A DNA stretch of 64,000 nt, taken from the sequence record NC_027399.1, one strand, 5' to 3'. Shown here one piece after another: positions 3,825 to 57,725 of the stretch. The notes below the pieces were generated by a model. The model searched no databases, had not been told where the DNA came from, and worked only from the letters and a program-made list of their open reading frames with translations. The translations under genes and the position numbers were made by a program. Within the stretch, counting starts at the first letter, position 1. Each line of letters begins with the position of its first letter.

Positions 3825-6140
3825 ATGATTAACGTTATTAAACGTGATGGATCAAAAGAACCACTCGACCTTGATAAAATTCACCAGATTTTATTTTTTG
3901 CATGTGAAGGTATTTCTGGTGTGTCTGTGTCCGAAATTGAAATTCGTGCTAAATTGCAATTTCATGAAGGAATTAAAACTTCTGTAATTCATGATATCCT
4001 AATTAAAAGTTCATCAGAGCTTATTTCTGAAGATACTCCAAATTATCAATACGTAGCTGGTCGTCTTTTGAATTATAGTATTCGTAAAGAAGTTTATGGT
4101 CAGTATGAACCAATTCCTTACGGAGAATATGTAAATAACATGGTTCAAAAAGGTATATACGATCCTATCATTCTGGAAAAATATAATTCAGCAGAAATCG
4201 AAGAACTCGGGAAATGCATTAAACACAAACGTGATGATAAATTTACTTTTGTTGCAATGAGTCAATGGCAAGGTAAGTATCTGTGTAAAAACCGTGTAAC
4301 TAAAGAAATTTATGAAACACCACAAATGGCTTATATGACTATCGCTGCTACGATTTTCTCTGAATACAGTACTGAAATTCGTTTGTCATATGTTAAGAAG
4401 TTCTATGATGCTATTAGTACTTTTGATATTAGTTTACCAACTCCGATTATGTCCGGTCTTCGCACTAATACACGTCAGTTCTCAAGTTGTGTAGTACTGA
4501 ATGTTGGCGATAGTCTTGATAGTATTGGTTCCAGTAATCATGCAATCCTGCGTTATATTTCACGTAAAGCAGGGCTTGGTGTTAATATGGGACGTATTCG
4601 TGCAATTGATTCTGCAATTCGTGATGGCGATGCAGTACATACTGGTGTAGTACCATTCTTATCTGCATTAGCAAAAACTGTCAAAAGCTGTTCCCAGGGA
4701 GGTGTAAGAGGCGGGGCAGCAACCGTACATTTTCCAATGTGGCATTTGGAATTTGAAAATATTGTAGTACTGAAAAATAATAAAGGAACTGAATTTAACC
4801 GAGTAAGACAACTGGACTATTGCTTCCAAATCAATAAGACATTATATCAACGATTGATTGATGGAAAAGACATTACATTCTTTAGCCCACATGATGTTCC
4901 TGATCTATATGATGCATTTTGTGCTGATCAAGAAGAATTTGAACGTCTGTATATTAAGTATGAACTCGATGAAACTATTCGTAGGAAAACTATGCCAGCG
5001 ATTGAAGCATTTAGTCATCTAATACAAGAGCGTGCAGAAACTGGCCGCATTTATATTCAGAATATTGATAATGCCAATGAGCATGGTTCATTTATTCCAG
5101 AAATTGCACCAATTGAGCAAAGTAATTTGTGTCAGGAAATTGATTTACCATCTGTTCCATTTGAAGATATTAATAATGGTGAAGGTCTTATTAGCCTATG
5201 TACTTTGAGTGCTATTAACTGGGGTAATTTTGACAAACCCGAAGATATGGAAGAAGCGTGTGATTTGGCTGTCCGTGCCCTGGATGCTATTCTTGATTAT
5301 CAGGATTATCCAGTACTACATGCTGAACGAGCTACAAAGCTCTACAGACCACTTGGTGTTGGTATTATGAGCCTAGCCTATTTCCTGGCTAAACGTGGCT
5401 TAAAATACGATACAAACGCATTGAGCACTATTAACGAATGGTCAGAAGCGTGGTCTTATTATTTGATTAAAGCATCCGTAAACCTTGCAAAAGAAAAAGG
5501 GCATTGTGATGGATTTAAGAATACTAAGTACTCACTGGGTTTATTCCCACATGACACTTATAAATCAGATTCATATATCAATGAAATTGCACCATATGAA
5601 TTAAAACAAGATTGGGATTCCCTACGTGAAGAAATGATGGTGTATGGTATTCGTAATGCTACATTACATGCAAATATGCCAGGAGAAACATCATCACAAA
5701 TCAGTAATAGTACTGCTGGTATTGAAAAGATTCGTTCTCTTGTAACAGTAAAAACTTCTAAAGATGGTGTTCTTAAACAAGTTGTACCTGAAATTTCAAA
5801 ATTAAAGAACAAATATGACCTACTATGGGAACAATCTGATAATATTGGTTATCTTCAGGTGTGCGGCGTTATGCAGAAATACATGGATCAAGGTATAAGT
5901 ACTAATACGAGTTATAATCCTGAAAAGTTCCAAGATGGAAAAGTGCCAATGTCAGTACTGTTAACAGAACTTCTAATGGCTTATAAACTTAACACAAAAC
6001 AACTATACTATCATAACGTGTTGGACAATGCTTCTGAAGTTGATATTGACAAATATATGGAAGAAAAAAATAAATTAACAAAAAATGATATTGTTTTGCC
6101 TGAGCTACCAGAAGATGATTGTGAGAGTTGTAAATTGTAA
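3825..6140 (+). CDS. nrdA: class Ia ribonucleotide reductase alpha subunit
   Basis: ATP cone VIKRDG, PTPIMSG, RQFSSC, SQGGVRGGA, QSNLCQEI, C-terminal CESC. Confidence 0.97.
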   Translation: MINVIKRDGSKEPLDLDKIHQILFFACEGISGVSVSEIEIRAKLQFHEGIKTSVIHDILIKSSSELISEDTPNYQYVAGRLLNYSIRKEVYGQYEPIPYGEYVNNMVQKGIYDPIILEKYNSAEIEELGKCIKHKRDDKFTFVAMSQWQGKYLCKNRVTKEIYETPQMAYMTIAATIFSEYSTEIRLSYVKKFYDAISTFDISLPTPIMSGLRTNTRQFSSCVVLNVGDSLDSIGSSNHAILRYISRKAGLGVNMGRIRAIDSAIRDGDAVHTGVVPFLSALAKTVKSCSQGGVRGGAATVHFPMWHLEFENIVVLKNNKGTEFNRVRQLDYCFQINKTLYQRLIDGKDITFFSPHDVPDLYDAFCADQEEFERLYIKYELDETIRRKTMPAIEAFSHLIQERAETGRIYIQNIDNANEHGSFIPEIAPIEQSNLCQEIDLPSVPFEDINNGEGLISLCTLSAINWGNFDKPEDMEEACDLAVRALDAILDYQDYPVLHAERATKLYRPLGVGIMSLAYFLAKRGLKYDTNALSTINEWSEAWSYYLIKASVNLAKEKGHCDGFKNTKYSLGLFPHDTYKSDSYINEIAPYELKQDWDSLREEMMVYGIRNATLHANMPGETSSQISNSTAGIEKIRSLVTVKTSKDGVLKQVVPEISKLKNKYDLLWEQSDNIGYLQVCGVMQKYMDQGISTNTSYNPEKFQDGKVPMSVLLTELLMAYKLNTKQLYYHNVLDNASEVDIDKYMEEKNKLTKNDIVLPELPEDDCESCKL

Positions 6141-7422: not shown

Positions 7423-7455
7423 AATTCAGTACTTAATCAGTACTGAATTTTTTTA
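7423..7455 (+). terminator. rho-independent terminator built on two AGTACT sites
   Basis: AAATTCAGTACT-TAATC-AGTACTGAATTT plus T tract. Confidence 0.65.
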
Positions 7456-7990: not shown

Positions 7991-9108
<1,118 letters not shown>

Positions 9109-53140: not shown

Positions 53141-53228
53141 GGCCGTATGTCCAAATTGGTAAAGGAGACAGACTTAAAATCTGTTGGTGATATTCACCTT
53201 CTCGATTCGAGTTCGAGTGCGGCTACCA
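53141..53228 (+). tRNA. tRNA-Leu(TAA)
   Basis: acceptor GGCCGTA/TGCGGCT, anticodon arm ACAGA-CTTAAAA-TCTGT, long variable arm, T arm CTCGA-TTCGAGT-TCGAG, encoded CCA. Confidence 0.93.
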
Positions 53229-53257
53229 AATTTATAGTACTTCATTAGGTAAACAAT

Positions 53258-53581
53258 ATGTGTACTGAAGCAAGAAGATATGTTTATATTTTGGTTCGCA
53301 AAGATTTAGAACTAAAGGATATTATTGTTCAAACTGCTCATGCTTCATATGAAAGTGCAAAAGAATTTAAAAATAATGCTGATAGAACATCTATTATAGT
53401 TTTAGAAGTCAAGGACTTATACAAACTAAATGATGCTAAAAGTTATTTAAATTCTAATGGCATTAATTGGACTGTGTATACTGAAAAATCTTTAGGATTT
53501 GGAGAAACTGCTATCAGTACTGAAGCACTCAATAACGAACAACGAAAAATTATGCGTAAGTTCCAATTATTGAAAATATAA
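53258..53581 (+). CDS. PTH2-like protein (second, divergent class)
   Basis: YVYILVRKDL....VQTAHA, IIVLEV, F.E...TAI...L..R..L.LL. Confidence 0.7.
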   Translation: MCTEARRYVYILVRKDLELKDIIVQTAHASYESAKEFKNNADRTSIIVLEVKDLYKLNDAKSYLNSNGINWTVYTEKSLGFGETAISTEALNNEQRKIMRKFQLLKI

Positions 53582-53594
53582 ATATAATAACAAA

Positions 53595-53670
<76 letters not shown>

Positions 53671-53675
53671 AATTC

Positions 53676-53772
53676 AACAGGTAGTAACGCTCTTAGGTGT
53701 ACATTAATATAGGAATAAGGGTTAACAGTACTGTACACAAACGAGTAACCCCGAAAGACCCGAAACCTGTTA
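53676..53772 (+). ncRNA. small RNA B (7-bp closing stem, possible pseudoknot)
   Basis: AACAGGT/ACCTGTT+A; GTGTACA/TGTACAC hairpin; loop GGGTTA can pair with downstream TAACCC. Confidence 0.55.
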
Positions 53773-53781
53773 AAGTTTTAC

Positions 53782-53832
53782 GGATGATTATAAATCTGAA
53801 TTGACAGAAACAGCTAAAACTGTTATTATCCT
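53782..53832 (+). ncRNA. 50-nt tRNA-like mini RNA, copy 1
   Basis: GGATGAT/ATTATCC, TCTG/CAGA, AACAG/CTGTT; covaries with copies 2 and 3. Confidence 0.75.
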
Positions 53833-53839
53833 ATTTTAT

Positions 53840-54024
53840 TCCACAATCAGACGTATATGGTGTAAGTTACGTCGATGAAATCCAGAACAAGATCTCTGGT
53901 ACTCTAGGAAGTGGTGAATGTTAACCTAGACGGGTTTGTTAATTGGACGATAAGCAATTAATACTTGACTAGCAGGTTTAAACTAGAGGTGACTGTCCTT
54001 CACTAAACTGGAAAACCGGGTGGA
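53840..54024 (+). ncRNA. small RNA D (~185 nt, multi-hairpin)
   Basis: TCCAC/GTGGA closing stem; GACGT/ACGTC, CCAGA/TCTGG, CTAGG/CCTAG, TTAATTG/CAATTAA, CTAG/CTAG, GTGA/TCAC stems; no ORF. Confidence 0.55.
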
Positions 54025-54079
54025 CTTTTAATTAAAAAAGTGTTGAACAAAAAGTTCAATAATGATATAATAAGTACCA

Positions 54080-54155
54080 ATGTAAGGCGTGGAACAATGT
54101 TTACATAAGTTACTTAGTAGCCTGTACGCCCCACGTCAAGGTAGCCGAAAGGCAA
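54080..54155 (+). ncRNA. small RNA C
   Basis: starts right after promoter 54043-54071; GGCGT/ACGCC or CGTGG/CCACG stem; GCC-GAAA-GGC GNRA hairpin. Confidence 0.45.
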
Positions 54156-54162
54156 GTTTAAT

Positions 54163-54213
54163 GGGTGGTTATAAATCTGAATTGACAGAGACTATTAAAA
54201 CAGTCACCATCCA
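54163..54213 (+). ncRNA. 50-nt tRNA-like mini RNA, copy 2
   Basis: GGGTGGT/ACCATCC, TCTG/CAGA, GACT/AGTC, then A and AATTTTAATTT. Confidence 0.75.
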
Positions 54214-54235
54214 AATTTTAATTTAATAGTTTAGT

Positions 54236-54379
54236 ATGAATAAAAAACAGATACATAAACAATATGATGAAATTGCAGTGAAGGTTTTTCGTGGTGAATT
54301 AGGTTATAAACCATCTGTTAAATCTAAATATTCAAAATCTTCTTCACTAAAGTTCAATCATAAAATAGAGTTTAAATAA
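54236..54379 (+). CDS. small basic hypothetical protein (47 aa, not in ORF track)
   Basis: open frame MNKKQIHKQYDEIAVKVFRGELGY...; weak RBS. Confidence 0.35.
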   Translation: MNKKQIHKQYDEIAVKVFRGELGYKPSVKSKYSKSSSLKFNHKIEFK

Positions 54380-54398
54380 TACTGGACAATAATATATA

Positions 54399-54863
54399 AT
54401 GAATATCACTAATGTAAAAGATTTTTTAGAATATTTTATTAAGAATACTCGTGCACGTGATGAATTAGAAAAGAATGGATTCATCCAAGGTAACGATTAC
54501 AGTAATTTCTTTTATAGTATTGATAAACATGAATATTATGTCGATGCAACTTTAAGTGATAATCCATATTATATAAAAGATGGGTATTGCATTGGATTTA
54601 CGTTTGAAGATAAATCAGTAGATGCACCAATAAACTTTTATGCATTATATTATAATAAAAAAGATAATATTTTGAAATTAGGATTTACTAGTGACATGGA
54701 TGAAGATGTTGTATTCAATTGTAACACATGGTTGGAACATGATTCATTCTTTCAAAGTACATTAATTCATAACTTTATGACAACAGATTTAGAGTACTGG
54801 AAAAATTGCATAGAATTACTTAATGTAATTTATAATGAACAAATCAAACAAAAATGGCAATAA
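54399..54863 (+). CDS. FQxS-motif family protein
   Basis: WLEHDSFFQSTLIHNFMTTDLEYWKNC. Confidence 0.7.
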   Translation: MNITNVKDFLEYFIKNTRARDELEKNGFIQGNDYSNFFYSIDKHEYYVDATLSDNPYYIKDGYCIGFTFEDKSVDAPINFYALYYNKKDNILKLGFTSDMDEDVVFNCNTWLEHDSFFQSTLIHNFMTTDLEYWKNCIELLNVIYNEQIKQKWQ

Positions 54864-54960
54864 TAGCAGGACGGTTCAGTATTTGGTAGTATGTTTGGCT
54901 GAATAAACGTGTAAAAAAGTGTTGAACAAAAAGTTCAGTACTATATAATTGACTTACTAC

Positions 54961-55034
54961 GTCCCCTTAGTTCAGTTGGATAGAACAACTGCCTTCTAAG
55001 CAGTAGGTCACTGGTTCGAGTCCAGTAGGGGATA
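54961..55034 (+). tRNA. tRNA-Arg(TCT)
   Basis: GTCCCCT/AGGGGAT, D arm GTTC/GAAC, ACTGC-CTTCTAA-GCAGT, ACTGG-TTCGAGT-CCAGT; CCA lies 2 nt past the discriminator. Confidence 0.93.
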
Positions 55035-55047
55035 TACCATACAATAT

Positions 55048-55071
55048 GGGAATAGTTAGAAGATATTCCCA
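55048..55071 (+). other. acceptor-like microhelix
   Basis: GGGAATA-GTTAGAAGA-TATTCCC+A followed by the same ATTTTAATTT trailer as the RNA genes. Confidence 0.3.
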
Positions 55072-55181
55072 ATTTTAATTTAAAAAGCGTTGAACAAAAA
55101 GTTCAATAATGATATAATGGTATTATAAAATGTTGTAATACTTAATATTAACTTTTAAGAAGATAATTAGTATCATACACA

Positions 55182-55273
<92 letters not shown>

Positions 55274-55331
55274 TAAAATTCAATTAAAAAAGTGTTGAAC
55301 AAAAAGTTCAATGCTGATATAATAAAAGAAT

Positions 55332-55422
<91 letters not shown>

Positions 55423-55430
55423 GATTTTAT

Positions 55431-55481
55431 GGATAGTTATAAAGTTGAATTAACAGCGACACTTAAAATTGTCACTATCCA
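55431..55481 (+). ncRNA. 50-nt tRNA-like mini RNA, copy 3
   Basis: GGATAGT/ACTATCC, GTTG/CAGC, GACA/TGTC, then A and AATTTTAATTT. Confidence 0.75.
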
Positions 55482-55540
55482 AATTTTAATTTAAATAGTA
55501 CTTGACAAAAATGTTCAGTACTGATACAATAAAGAATATT

Positions 55541-55618
55541 GGCCCTTTACTCTCAAGTGGTTAGAGAATCCGACTCATAATCGGTAGGCTCTGAGTTCGA
55601 ATCTCAGAAGGGCCACCA
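55541..55618 (+). tRNA. tRNA-Ile2(CAT) (lysidine-type; Met less likely)
   Basis: GGCCCTT/AAGGGCC-A-CCA and GACTCATAATC arm closely resemble enterobacterial tRNA-Ile2; own promoter TTGACA-17-TACAAT. Confidence 0.88.
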
Positions 55619-55637
55619 AATTTTAAAACATAATATA

Positions 55638-56345
55638 ATGAAAATACAATTACAATATCCATATAATCAAGATTGGGATACAGGTTCATTAACAATTAAT
55701 CCCGAAGGTCGAAGAACTGTTATTTTATATAACAAAACTACAAAAATCACAAGTAGTACTGCTTATGCACGATATTTGTTAGCAGTGCACAATAACAGAT
55801 ATTTAACTGAAAATGAAGAAGCTGACCATATTGATGAAGATTTCACTAATGATGATATATCTAATCTTCAAATTTTGACAATAGAAGAACATAGAGCTAA
55901 ATCAATTGCGAATGGGATTCAAGCTAAATATGATGAATTTGTGTGTAAAGGTTGTGGAATAAAATTTTTAAGAAGACATAATCAAGTTAAGTCATATACA
56001 AAATATTGTAGTAAAAAATGTTCTTGGAAAAATAATCCTCCACCAACAAAAACAAAAAATGGTGACACGACAATCGATTATGATAAAGTAAAAGAATATA
56101 TAAACGATGGATTGTCAGATACTGAAATTGCAAAGAAAATGAATATAAATCGCAATTCAGTACTAAATTATAGAACTAAACACAATATACCTTCTAAAAA
56201 ATTTGCTAATGTGAATATTTTAGAAGATAATATTGATGAAATAAAACAACGTTTGCTTTCTGGTGAAAAGAAAGTTGATATATACAAAAGCTATGGTTCT
56301 TCAAAAAATGTTTTTGCAAGATTTTTAAAGAGACATGGATTATAA
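55638..56345 (+). mobile_element. HNH homing endonuclease in tRNA cluster
   Basis: EADHIDEDFTNDDISNLQILT..EH HNH motif, CxxC..CxxxC zinc finger, two C-terminal HTH-like segments. Confidence 0.8.
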
Positions 56346-56354
56346 TAGAATAAT

Positions 56355-56427
56355 GACTCTGTAGCACAATCGGTGGTGCGATTGACTGTTAATCAATTGG
56401 TTGGGGATTCGAGTTCCTCCAGAGTCG
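56355..56427 (+). tRNA. tRNA-Asn(GTT)
   Basis: GACTCTG/CAGAGTC, GCAC/GTGC D arm, ATTGA-CTGTTAA-TCAAT, G73, no encoded CCA. Confidence 0.9.
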
Positions 56428-56445
56428 CTTAACAAACCAAAGAAT

Positions 56446-56593
56446 TGTACCTAAATAACGAGTATATGGATTCTCTATGATTGTCCCTGTATGAGTTAGA
56501 GAGATTATTCATAAGAAGTCGAGTGTATAGATTCTCAAAGAAATGATTGTTTATACATGAGTTATCTTAAAACGAATATCTCAAGGTACACCA
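56446..56593 (+). ncRNA. CCA-ended ~147-nt RNA with two tandem repeated hairpin modules
   Basis: GTACCT/AGGTAC-A-CCA; two modules CGAGT.TAT.GATTCTC..ATGATTGT..ATGAGTTA. Confidence 0.6.
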
Positions 56594-56600
56594 AACAATT

Positions 56601-56649
56601 GACTCTGTAGTTCAGTTGGTAGATCTTATATAGTTACCAACCAGAGTCG
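56601..56649 (+). pseudogene. internally deleted tRNA-Asn-like remnant or mini RNA
   Basis: same acceptor GACTCTG/CAGAGTC-G-CTT as tRNA-Asn; D-arm-like TAGTTCAGTTGGTAGA; no anticodon or T arm. Confidence 0.6.
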
Positions 56650-56657
56650 CTTACAAT

Positions 56658-56722
56658 GGAAGGTGGTAATACATCAGTATTACCTTTTAAGACAGAAGAT
56701 ATGAGTATCTTCCCTTCCACCA
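56658..56722 (+). ncRNA. 65-nt CCA-ended tRNA-Ser-like mini RNA
   Basis: GGAAGG/CCTTCC-A-CCA, GGTAATAC/GTATTACC hairpin, GAAGAT/ATCTTC hairpin stacked on acceptor (6+6 bp). Confidence 0.6.
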
Positions 56723-56724
56723 CA

Positions 56725-56812
56725 CATTGTACTCTTCTCCCGTAAGGAGAATGACAAAAAACTATCCGAAAGATAGAAAGCCTGAAATAACAGGGTGCAA
56801 TTAAATTACAAT

Positions 56813-56813
<1 letters not shown>
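56725..56813 (+). ncRNA. three-hairpin cloverleaf-like RNA
   Basis: CATTGTA/TACAATG encloses TTCTCC/GGAGAA, CTATC/GATAG and CCTG/CAGG hairpins. Confidence 0.5.
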
Positions 56814-56877
<64 letters not shown>

Positions 56878-56882
56878 ATTTT

Positions 56883-57007
56883 GGACAAATCGTACTGAAT
56901 TAGTACTGTAATAATAGACACTTATTGCTGTAAACTGGAATGCGGTATACATTCCTTCAGATACAGAGTGTGACAGTATGATGTTAAAGGTATCCTTTGA
57001 CTGTCCA
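56883..57007 (+). ncRNA. multi-hairpin small RNA
   Basis: GGACA/TGTCC+A; ACACT/AGTGT, CTGTA/TACAG, GGAATG/CATTCC, GACAGT/ACTGTC, AAAGG/CCTTT stems. Confidence 0.45.
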
Positions 57008-57033
57008 AATTAATTTAAATGGAGTACTGAATA

Positions 57034-57234
57034 ATGTCCAAATATGTTAATCGACAAAAACGAAAAGCACGTTCCAAGGATGAAATTCTTCAATTGATTC
57101 AAGAAAATAAAAAAGATGTAGTGATTGATGAATATATTTTTCAGTATGGTAATCAACGAGGAATGGTACAAGAAAGTAATGGTAAGTATCATTCTGAGCA
57201 TTACGATCTTATTAAAAGAATTCTATTGAAATAA
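57034..57234 (+). CDS. small hypothetical protein
   Basis: 66 aa, GGAG RBS. Confidence 0.6.
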   Translation: MSKYVNRQKRKARSKDEILQLIQENKKDVVIDEYIFQYGNQRGMVQESNGKYHSEHYDLIKRILLK

Positions 57235-57439: not shown

Positions 57440-57454
57440 AGAAAGTAATCAATA

Positions 57455-57580
57455 ATACCTATCATCTAATATCAGTACTGATGCGTATCAGCAGATGGCT
57501 TGATGGGCAGTACTGACAGGATACATCGTTCGCCGGGTGCGGGTTCGGTGGATATACGTAAAGTCGTATTGGGTATGCCA
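57455..57580 (+). ncRNA. 126-nt CCA-ended RNA with tRNA-like acceptor/T-arm 3' domain
   Basis: ATACCTA/TGGGTAT-G-CCA with adjacent ATACG-TAAAGT-CGTAT hairpin (7+5 bp); internal TCAGTACTG/CAGTACTGA arm. Confidence 0.65.
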
Positions 57581-57603: not shown

Positions 57604-57679
57604 TAATGTGATAGCTCAAATAGGTAGAGCGGGAGGCCATAGTGCTGACTAGTTTGTGAGTTCAATTCTCACCCATTAT
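57604..57679 (+). pseudogene. pseudo-tRNA
   Basis: TAGCTCAAATAGGTAGAGC D arm and GTGAG-TTCAATT-CTCAC T arm intact; acceptor and anticodon stems disrupted; CAT in loop region. Confidence 0.55.
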
Positions 57680-57690
57680 TAATAAAATTG

Positions 57691-57725
57691 TAAGCTACCC
57701 TGTTATTTGGGTAGCTTTTTCTTTT
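57691..57725 (+). terminator. terminator ending the RNA island
   Basis: AGCTACCC-TGTTATTT-GGGTAGCT plus T tract. Confidence 0.7.

Follow-up and report, generated by a model that had tools for sequence, protein, structure and literature searches.

Positions 57455-57580 (+) of a 64,000-nt stretch of sequence record NC_027399.1 (the window, that is, the whole stretch analysed) encode, to judge from the comparison of homologous sequences, a real, conserved and structured RNA module. We read it as probably the gene for a small, stable, non-decoding RNA that is built on a tRNA frame, excised by RNase P and trimmed to its CCA. The folds, alignments and searches described below establish the structure, conservation, strand, module boundaries and genomic setting of the element. 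The element is very probably a stable, processed RNA with the frame of a tRNA, and it forms a new family of a long-known and unexplained kind.

The window belongs to Klebsiella phage K64-1 (Alcyoneusvirus, 346.6 kb), which the part around the element matches at 100% identity; to the phages RaK2, Muenster, KP13-7 and RCIP0023 this part is 94-99.8% identical. Seven tRNA genes (ARAGORN and Rfam) lie on the plus strand at 53141-56428, and the 126-nt element, on the same strand, lies at the downstream end of this K64-1 tRNA island, with tRNA-like elements on both sides of it. Record annotations across the element disagree: a minus-strand ‘hypothetical protein’ in RefSeq K64-1, a plus-strand open reading frame (ORF) in RaK2 and no ORF in EJP2. 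No ORF across the element is conserved. Because the calls differ between records, they are most likely spurious and the stretch non-coding, and a 126-nt RNA gene would correct them in the GenBank and RefSeq records. The only informative functions that Pfam and PHROGs gave for neighbouring proteins belong to a PTH2-like ORF and to an HNH endonuclease, both located elsewhere in the island. The former, a 107-aa ORF at 53258-53581 (+) inside the tRNA island, matches the peptidyl-tRNA hydrolase family PTH2 of Pfam (E 5e-6; 27.2 bits against a cut-off of 23).

Architecture of the 126-nt element

An earlier note on this DNA had proposed a non-tRNA RNA that ends in a tRNA-like acceptor/T minihelix with an encoded CCA, and this core is supported, with (G/A)CCA as the end, the strand of the tRNAs and a phage tRNA island as the setting. 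The acceptor strands ATACCTA and TGGGTAT pair over 7 bp, the discriminator G and the encoded CCA follow, and the hairpin ATACG-TAAAGT-CGTAT abuts the 3' acceptor strand without a gap, all as described there (Table 1). The long interior arm, TCAGTACT / AGTACTGA, was likewise located, at 57472-57479 and 57509-57516. The 7+5 minihelix had been called perfect; both stems are there, but one acceptor pair is a U-G wobble, so that ‘perfect’ does not strictly apply.

Folded at minimum free energy (MFE), the 126 nt form a four-way junction whose spacing is exactly that of a tRNA (7 bp/2 nt/4 bp/1 nt/5 bp/3 nt/5 bp/7 bp), linked by UC (2 nt, with U at position 8), A (1 nt) and GAU (3 nt). The place of the D loop is taken by a 51-nt insert, in which an internal loop leads to a stem of 8-9 bp (UCAGUACU:AGUACUGA) with a hairpin tip. 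In place of the anticodon loop stand 17 nt that fold, in all four sequence variants of the element, into a closed hairpin: a UU/UU internal loop, then a short stem, CCG:CGG, under a G-rich tetraloop. A 7-nt anticodon loop with U33 and an anticodon is absent from the element, and the loop in the T position is a non-canonical 6-nt UAAAGU, which provides neither the 7-nt TTCRANN T loop nor its elbow with the D-loop GG. On this model, 57455-57580 is a whole tRNA cloverleaf frame with both decoding loops sealed by hairpins. Two statements of the earlier note fall away here. It saw no anticodon arm, yet a 5-bp stem occupies the anticodon position (57524-28 with 57546-50) in the MFE fold, the RNAalifold consensus and the folds of the four variants. 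It also saw a tRNA-like handle on a cargo RNA; the interior is instead the rest of the cloverleaf, its D and anticodon loops replaced by closed hairpins, and the end-to-end alignment of real tRNAs to a covariance model of the element (R1), as that model's next-best matches, also disfavours a division into handle and cargo.

Table 1 Positions of the parts of the element and of features near it
Feature	Position	Strand	Remarks
5' leader CAATA	57450-57454	+	Directly before the predicted RNase P site (57454/57455); identical in four of four variants
Acceptor stem, 5' strand AUACCUA	57455-57461	+	Pairs with 57570-57576; the RaK2 change CU>UC keeps both pairs via G-U wobble
Arm I, D-arm position	57464-57522	+	4-bp AUCU:GGAU (57464-67 with 57519-22; invariant in four variants), internal loop, long stem, tip
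Arm I long stem, 8-9 bp	57472-79 with 57509-16	+	Two CAGUACUG palindromes; invariant in four variants
Arm I hairpin tip	57480-57508	+	Sequence and length vary; a hairpin in each variant
Arm II, anticodon-arm position	57524-57550	+	5-bp CAUCG:CGGUG, UU/UU loop, 3-4 bp CCG:CGG, G-rich tetraloop
Junction GAU, variable-loop position, 3 nt	57551-57553	+	Invariant in four variants (RNAalifold)
T-arm-like hairpin	57554-57569	+	5-bp AUACG:CGUAU, 6-nt loop UAAAGU; loop invariant
Acceptor stem, 3' strand UGGGUAU, discriminator G57577, CCA 57578-57580	57570-57580	+	CCA invariant; trailer AAT shared
Degenerate tRNA-like element	57605-57678	+	25 nt downstream; Rfam tRNA 23.4 bits (cut-off 29); no ARAGORN call
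Terminator-like hairpin and T run	57692-57725	+	9-bp stem with 5 G-C pairs, then TTTCTTTTT; would end the unit
Promoter cassettes	54035-54071, 54915-54949, 55083-55118, 55288-55323	+

With hairpins closing the D and anticodon positions and a non-canonical T loop, the RNA cannot decode and is probably not charged. The element is neither a decoding tRNA nor a tmRNA; as the earlier note had stated, the sequence has no tmRNA-type tag ORF, and ARAGORN and Rfam give no tmRNA call. Compared with canonical tRNA (RF00005), it has the spacing 7/2/4/1/5/3/5/7, the U at position 8, a discriminator, CCA, an AAAT trailer and a place in a tRNA island, and it differs in having the 51-nt D hairpin and the UAAAGU loop and in lacking an anticodon loop. 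This unusually clean design, with the frame intact and the loops sealed, would set apart what lets the processing machinery take an RNA for a tRNA from what lets it decode.

Detection by motif, descriptor and covariance model differs sharply in weight. The bare 7+5 minihelix followed by NCCA occurs 16 times in the window against 10.5 +/- 3.5 in shuffles; it is not rare, so the motif alone proves little. A descriptor of the full cloverleaf geometry plus CCA matches the element and is expected 0.09 times per shuffled window; it has one other match, at 8614-8751 (-), which lies opposite to the genes and is probably due to chance. The fold z-score of the element is modest (-2.08). The real support for the element is its conservation with structure-preserving changes. 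With filters off, the matches that R1 ranked next in the window were tRNA-Gly (E 0.005) and tRNA-Met, with exact ends, and in the T4 tRNA region it matched genuine tRNA-Gly, Leu, Arg and Thr, again with exact ends; that the next-best matches are genuine tRNAs with exact boundaries marks the frame as tRNA-like. ARAGORN made no tRNA or tmRNA call at 57455-57580 (a relaxed run yielded a mis-bounded call only) and found nothing in an in-silico copy from which the D-position insert had been removed, and no Rfam family, tRNA and tmRNA included, matches 57455-57580 at E up to 10. The frame of the element is tRNA-like and its sequence is not.

Homologues, covariation and module boundaries

A blastn search against about 50,700 phage records found the element in only ten, namely nine Klebsiella Alcyoneusvirus records and E. 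coli Asteriusvirus EJP2. Exact-pattern scans of IMG/VR (three distinct patterns), JGI metagenomes and GTDB genomes were screened with R1; from IMG/VR and JGI came one further variant, the fourth, carried by a contig of 366,160 bp from an uncultivated phage, together with two metagenome copies of types already known, and the remaining pattern matches were discarded in the screen as chance occurrences inside coding DNA. The four sequence variants are thus the K64-1 type, the RaK2 type, EJP2 and the 366-kb metagenomic phage. When whole records were searched with R1, K64-1 and EJP2 each had a single copy and the related Asteriusvirus phages PBECO4 and ph0011 had no copy; the element is therefore dispensable in the Asteriusvirus lineage. 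It represents an independent and unannotated family in RaK2-like jumbo phages, which are considered for Klebsiella therapy.

Separate folds of all four variants give the same cloverleaf, the RNAalifold consensus agrees with it, and 128 of 128 stem cells across the variants are standard pairs. Three pairs are compensatory, all with the changed state in EJP2 and the metagenomic phage: the closing pair of the T-like stem (A-U to G-C) and two pairs of arm II (A-U to C-G at 57525:57549 and G-C to A-U at 57535:57540). Another three pairs gain or lose a G-U wobble: two belong to the acceptor stem of RaK2, with its CU>UC swap, and the T-like stem has one U-A to U-G change. Only one of 500 column shuffles reached the pairing or covariation observed, and in slid registers 27-43% of cells pair. 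Each variant contains at least three G-U pairs, which become A-C mismatches if read from the other strand, and this places the RNA on the plus strand. The arm II tetraloop varies (GGUG, GUGG and GCAG); no variant departs from the others in the UAAAGU loop, in the junction nucleotides or in the CAGUACUG stems. RaK2 has A as its discriminator, the other three variants have G, and all four encode CCA. The stem and the CCA, on whose presence in homologues the earlier note had staked its proposal, are kept in every homologue found. The covariation is real but thin, coming from three compensatory pairs among four variants of two genera and one metagenomic phage.

Each of the four variants has a context of its own. 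In K64-1, it follows a 64-aa ORF, 15 nt past the stop codon, with two small ORFs upstream; in RaK2, it follows the preceding 66-aa ORF and has the downstream sequence in common with K64-1; in EJP2, it lies between two unrelated ORFs; and in the metagenomic phage, it lies 7 nt downstream of an odd 86-nt tRNA-like gene ending in CCA. Similarity among the variants begins at the CAATA leader, 5 nt upstream of the acceptor stem, and ends in EJP2 and the metagenomic phage at AAT, 3 nt past the CCA. The 40 nt upstream of CAATA are unrelated (38-42% identity), with 38-45% identity for the differing flanks overall. Contigs from four wastewater runs show the element to be present, in varying contexts, with a break or change of context at 57446-57449. 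The trailer, CCAAAT, is the same as that of the phage's own CCA-encoding tRNAs (Leu, Gly and Met). Since the leader and trailer boundaries fall at the ends of the acceptor stem across contexts, the conserved unit is exactly the predicted RNA, moving as a discrete module.

The 86-nt tRNA-like gene of the metagenomic phage (L129:7074-7159, +) has a canonical T arm and an ACCA end; in the ARAGORN call it is a tRNA-Gly(tcc) whose anticodon is oddly placed. At the same locus, ARAGORN also makes a tRNA call with a 4-base anticodon (ctgg; 3851-3936).

Probable transcription and processing, and possible roles

The 126-nt element has no promoter of its own, and the neighbouring tRNAs and small RNAs each have TTGAAC, about 17 nt and TATAAT. 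Lacking a promoter and starting 15 nt past a stop codon, the RNA must be cut from a longer transcript. On its 3' side, 25 nt of A/T lead to the degenerate tRNA-like element (Table 1), in the same apparent transcription unit. A near-identical strong promoter cassette, consisting of AAAAAGTGTTGAACAAAAAGTTCA, a few variable bases and TATAAT, stands before single tRNA or small-RNA genes of the island at the positions given in Table 1.

The minimal substrate of bacterial RNase P is a 12-bp acceptor/T stack with a 3' RCCA, and the element has both features, a gapless 7+5 bp stack followed by GCCA in three variants and ACCA in RaK2. Transcribed inside a longer transcript, the RNA would present its stacked minihelix and RCCA to host RNase P, which would cut between A57454 and A57455. 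RNase P normally uses the elbow between the D and T loops, so that cleavage of an RNA with a non-canonical T loop and no such elbow may be inefficient. The host 3' trimming pathway handles an encoded CCA with an A/U-rich trailer; on the element, tRNA 3' trimming would halt at the encoded CCA, and the cloverleaf frame would then shield the ends of the RNA and presumably make it stable. Most likely, what does the work in the RNA are the invariant features of its hairpins, which the scaffold presents (the CAGUACUG duplex, a GUUC/GUUC tandem-U loop and the UAAAGU loop), and these hairpins may bind, or act as a decoy for, a host or phage protein. Two GGAU motifs were considered as CsrA sites and dropped, both being largely base-paired.

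Stable tRNA-like RNAs in phage tRNA islands have been known since the 1970s, and the species 1 and 2 RNAs of T4 are the classic cases. Their genes, rnaC (139 nt) and rnaD (119 nt), lie at the end of the T4 tRNA cluster. Like the K64-1 RNA, they are small non-tRNA RNAs encoded on the tRNA strand in the tRNA cluster of a lytic phage, and their 3' parts are tRNA-like: rnaC has a T-arm-like hairpin with the loop UUCGAAU, and an encoded CCA comes directly after rnaD. The K64-1 RNA differs in keeping the whole cloverleaf spacing and in its 6-nt UAAAGU loop, where rnaC has a canonical-looking T loop. The T4 RNAs also have demonstrated expression, having been detected by Northern blot (PMC9697503), whereas the K64-1 RNA is predicted from sequence. 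Decades on, the function of rnaC and rnaD is still described as unknown (PMC3014915, PMC9697503, PMC12685909); a T4-like phage carries a convergent adaptive single-nucleotide polymorphism in rnaD, a hint that its role depends on the host (PMC12685909). Homology between the two systems was considered and rejected, as R1 with filters off matches T4 tRNAs and neither rnaC nor rnaD. By analogy of setting and probable biogenesis, the K64-1 RNA would belong with the T4 species 1 and 2 RNAs in kind and to neither of their families, and it offers a second system, beside theirs, for asking what such RNAs do. A stacked acceptor/T-like helix with a 3' RCCA also serves as a processing and stabilising handle in the tmRNA precursor, the C4 antisense RNA of P1/P7 and eukaryotic mascRNA. 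The element differs from tmRNA in having neither tag ORF nor pseudoknots, and from C4-type antisense RNA in having no evident target, because its sole variable single-stranded part, the arm I tip, is not conserved.

The best placed of the alternatives, although itself unlikely, is a role in cis, in which the fold would do nothing but recruit RNase P to cut a polycistronic transcript, uncoupling the fates of the upstream and downstream mRNAs and leaving an excised RNA without a role. Such punctuation would suit an element that, unlike the neighbouring tRNAs with their strong TTGAAC...TATAAT, has no promoter, and that in K64-1 starts 15 nt past a small-ORF stop; in EJP2, it starts 6 nt past a stop codon, and an SD-like GGAGAG begins 10 nt past the CCA, before the next start. 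A minihelix would be enough for RNase P, yet about 95 nt of extra structure are kept, largely invariant and compensated. The flanking genes moreover differ in the four contexts, and the metagenomic copy follows a tRNA-like gene, not an ORF.

Somewhat less probable again is that the tRNA frame is a delivery and stabilisation scaffold for a decoy. Phage tRNAs counter tRNA-targeting defences, for example the T5 tRNA-Tyr against a retron (bioRxiv 10.1101/2023.03.15.532788), which makes a decoy role for a non-decoding tRNA-like RNA conceivable. In one version, the CCA-ended acceptor minihelix could soak up host defence enzymes that attack tRNA 3' ends or acceptor stems. In another, also conceivable, the CAGUACUG RNA duplex could titrate or guide a factor that reads the motif on phage transcripts or DNA; if true, this version would tie a genome signal that is over-represented about 7-fold to a dedicated small RNA.

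Decay of a tRNA gene is an improbable origin for what is seen. The element would then be a pseudogene that lost its loops, for instance by insertion of the two-palindrome segment into the D loop, and is now drifting. The tRNA-like frame (from the R1 matches) is compatible with this, as are the other degenerate tRNA pieces of the island (56603-56655 and 57605-57678, the latter at 23.4 bits) and the lack of the element in PBECO4 and ph0011. Against drift speak the four variants, from two genera and a metagenome, in which all stem changes keep pairing, three of them as compensatory pairs, and the T-like loop and junction nucleotides are invariant; both replaced loops are tidy closed hairpins in every variant, and the module moves between contexts as an exact unit.

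Charging, the AGTACT palindrome and neighbouring elements

Aminoacylation, which the earlier note had allowed for, finds no support and is unlikely. K64-1 has G as the discriminator and RaK2 has A, although the two are otherwise 95% identical. The acceptor stem has A1-U72 and A3-U70 and no G3-U70, the base at -1 is A, not G, and there is neither an anticodon nor a long variable arm. To our knowledge, no known E. coli identity set fits the element, the acceptor-only sets of Ala and His included. A charged tRNA-like RNA that acts with EF-Tu or on the ribosome, as tmRNA or the tRNA-like structures of plant viruses do, would have in its favour the encoded CCA, the purine discriminator, the 12-bp acceptor/T stack and the PTH2-like peptidyl-tRNA hydrolase gene of the same island (53258-53581), but it is very improbable given the discriminator switch between close relatives, the unmet acceptor-only rules for Ala and His (A1-U72, A3-U70, A at -1) and the lack of anticodon, long variable arm, tag ORF and tmRNA call.

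The long stem of arm I consists of two copies of the CAGTACTG palindrome, whose core, AGTACT, is abundant throughout the window: 157 copies against 21 expected (about 7-fold over), with 32 copies of CAGTACTG against 0.5 expected. The flanks of AGTACT are symmetric, with TTCAGTACTGAA as the extended form, and examples lie at 7438, 35268, 55516, 57473 and 57508. Copies are found between genes, inside promoters (for example, 55497-55524) and in coding DNA, there in two reading frames, so codon usage is no explanation. All relatives sampled (RaK2, EJP2, ph0011, PBECO4 and the metagenomic phage) are enriched in the motif, 5-24 fold, and the T4 tRNA region lacks it. Because the arm I stem is built from a motif that is abundant genome-wide, its invariance could arise at the DNA level and not from the RNA; the constraint may act on RNA, on DNA or on both. 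As an account of the whole element, a DNA-level feature, with two TTCAGTACTGAA palindromes 35 nt apart as possible protein-binding sites and a coincidental fold, would draw on this enrichment in the window and in all relatives examined, on the copies inside promoters and on the ten motif pairs that lie within 45 nt of each other (16 expected, so no commoner than chance), but it has as slim a prospect as charging does, since the motif accounts for only 16 of 126 nt, compensatory changes fall in the other helices and the module boundaries coincide exactly with the acceptor-stem ends. Literature searches yielded nothing on the 126-nt RNA and nothing on an AGTACT motif in these phages. An over-represented palindrome of the K64-1/RaK2 phage clade calls for a separate explanation.

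Other RNA-like elements lie near the 126-nt RNA gene. The degenerate element at 57605-57678 has good D and T arms but lacks a recognisable anticodon arm. It is 88.7% identical to a ‘tRNA-Cys’ of the N4-like Escherichia phages PBM-2 and PBM-3, with compensatory changes in the acceptor stem, and ARAGORN does not call this counterpart either; it may be a non-canonical tRNA common to unrelated phages. A second CCA-ended non-tRNA element is found at 56658-56721 (+), where GGAAGG pairs with CCUUCC and is followed by A and CCA. It has a 7-bp hairpin stacked on the 6-bp end stem and an 8-bp hairpin inside (fold z-score -4.67). RaK2 has a nearly identical copy; other relatives have the part upstream of 56717 replaced, and the matching stretch is annotated as ‘tRNA-Met’ or ‘tRNA-Ile’ in several Asteriusvirus records. 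This element lies in a 600-nt ORF-poor region (56429-57035, +) that is 99% identical between K64-1 and RaK2, more than the flanking genes. It includes a partial copy of the two ends of tRNA-Asn (56603-56655), and a segment at about 56915-57010 is conserved in EJP2 (L004, about 1660-1770) between other genes; the region may hold further structured RNAs.

A mini RNA of ~50 nt, to which the earlier note had likened the minihelix of the 126-nt element, occurs in three copies (53782-53832, 54163-54213 and 55431-55481, all +). The resemblance is partial: in one copy the stacked hairpin has 5 bp and a loop of 6 nt (CUAAAA), in the remaining two the stem has 4 bp and the loop 8 nt, and all three lack a clean N-CCA end. 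All are closed by an end stem of 7 bp, at which the copies differ by several compensatory changes, and all contain a conserved UAUAAAUCUGAAUUGACAGA segment that is single-stranded, as well as a stacked hairpin whose loop is of the UAAAA type. Each copy stands at the end of a small transcription unit, and an A/T-rich run with TTTT comes after it.
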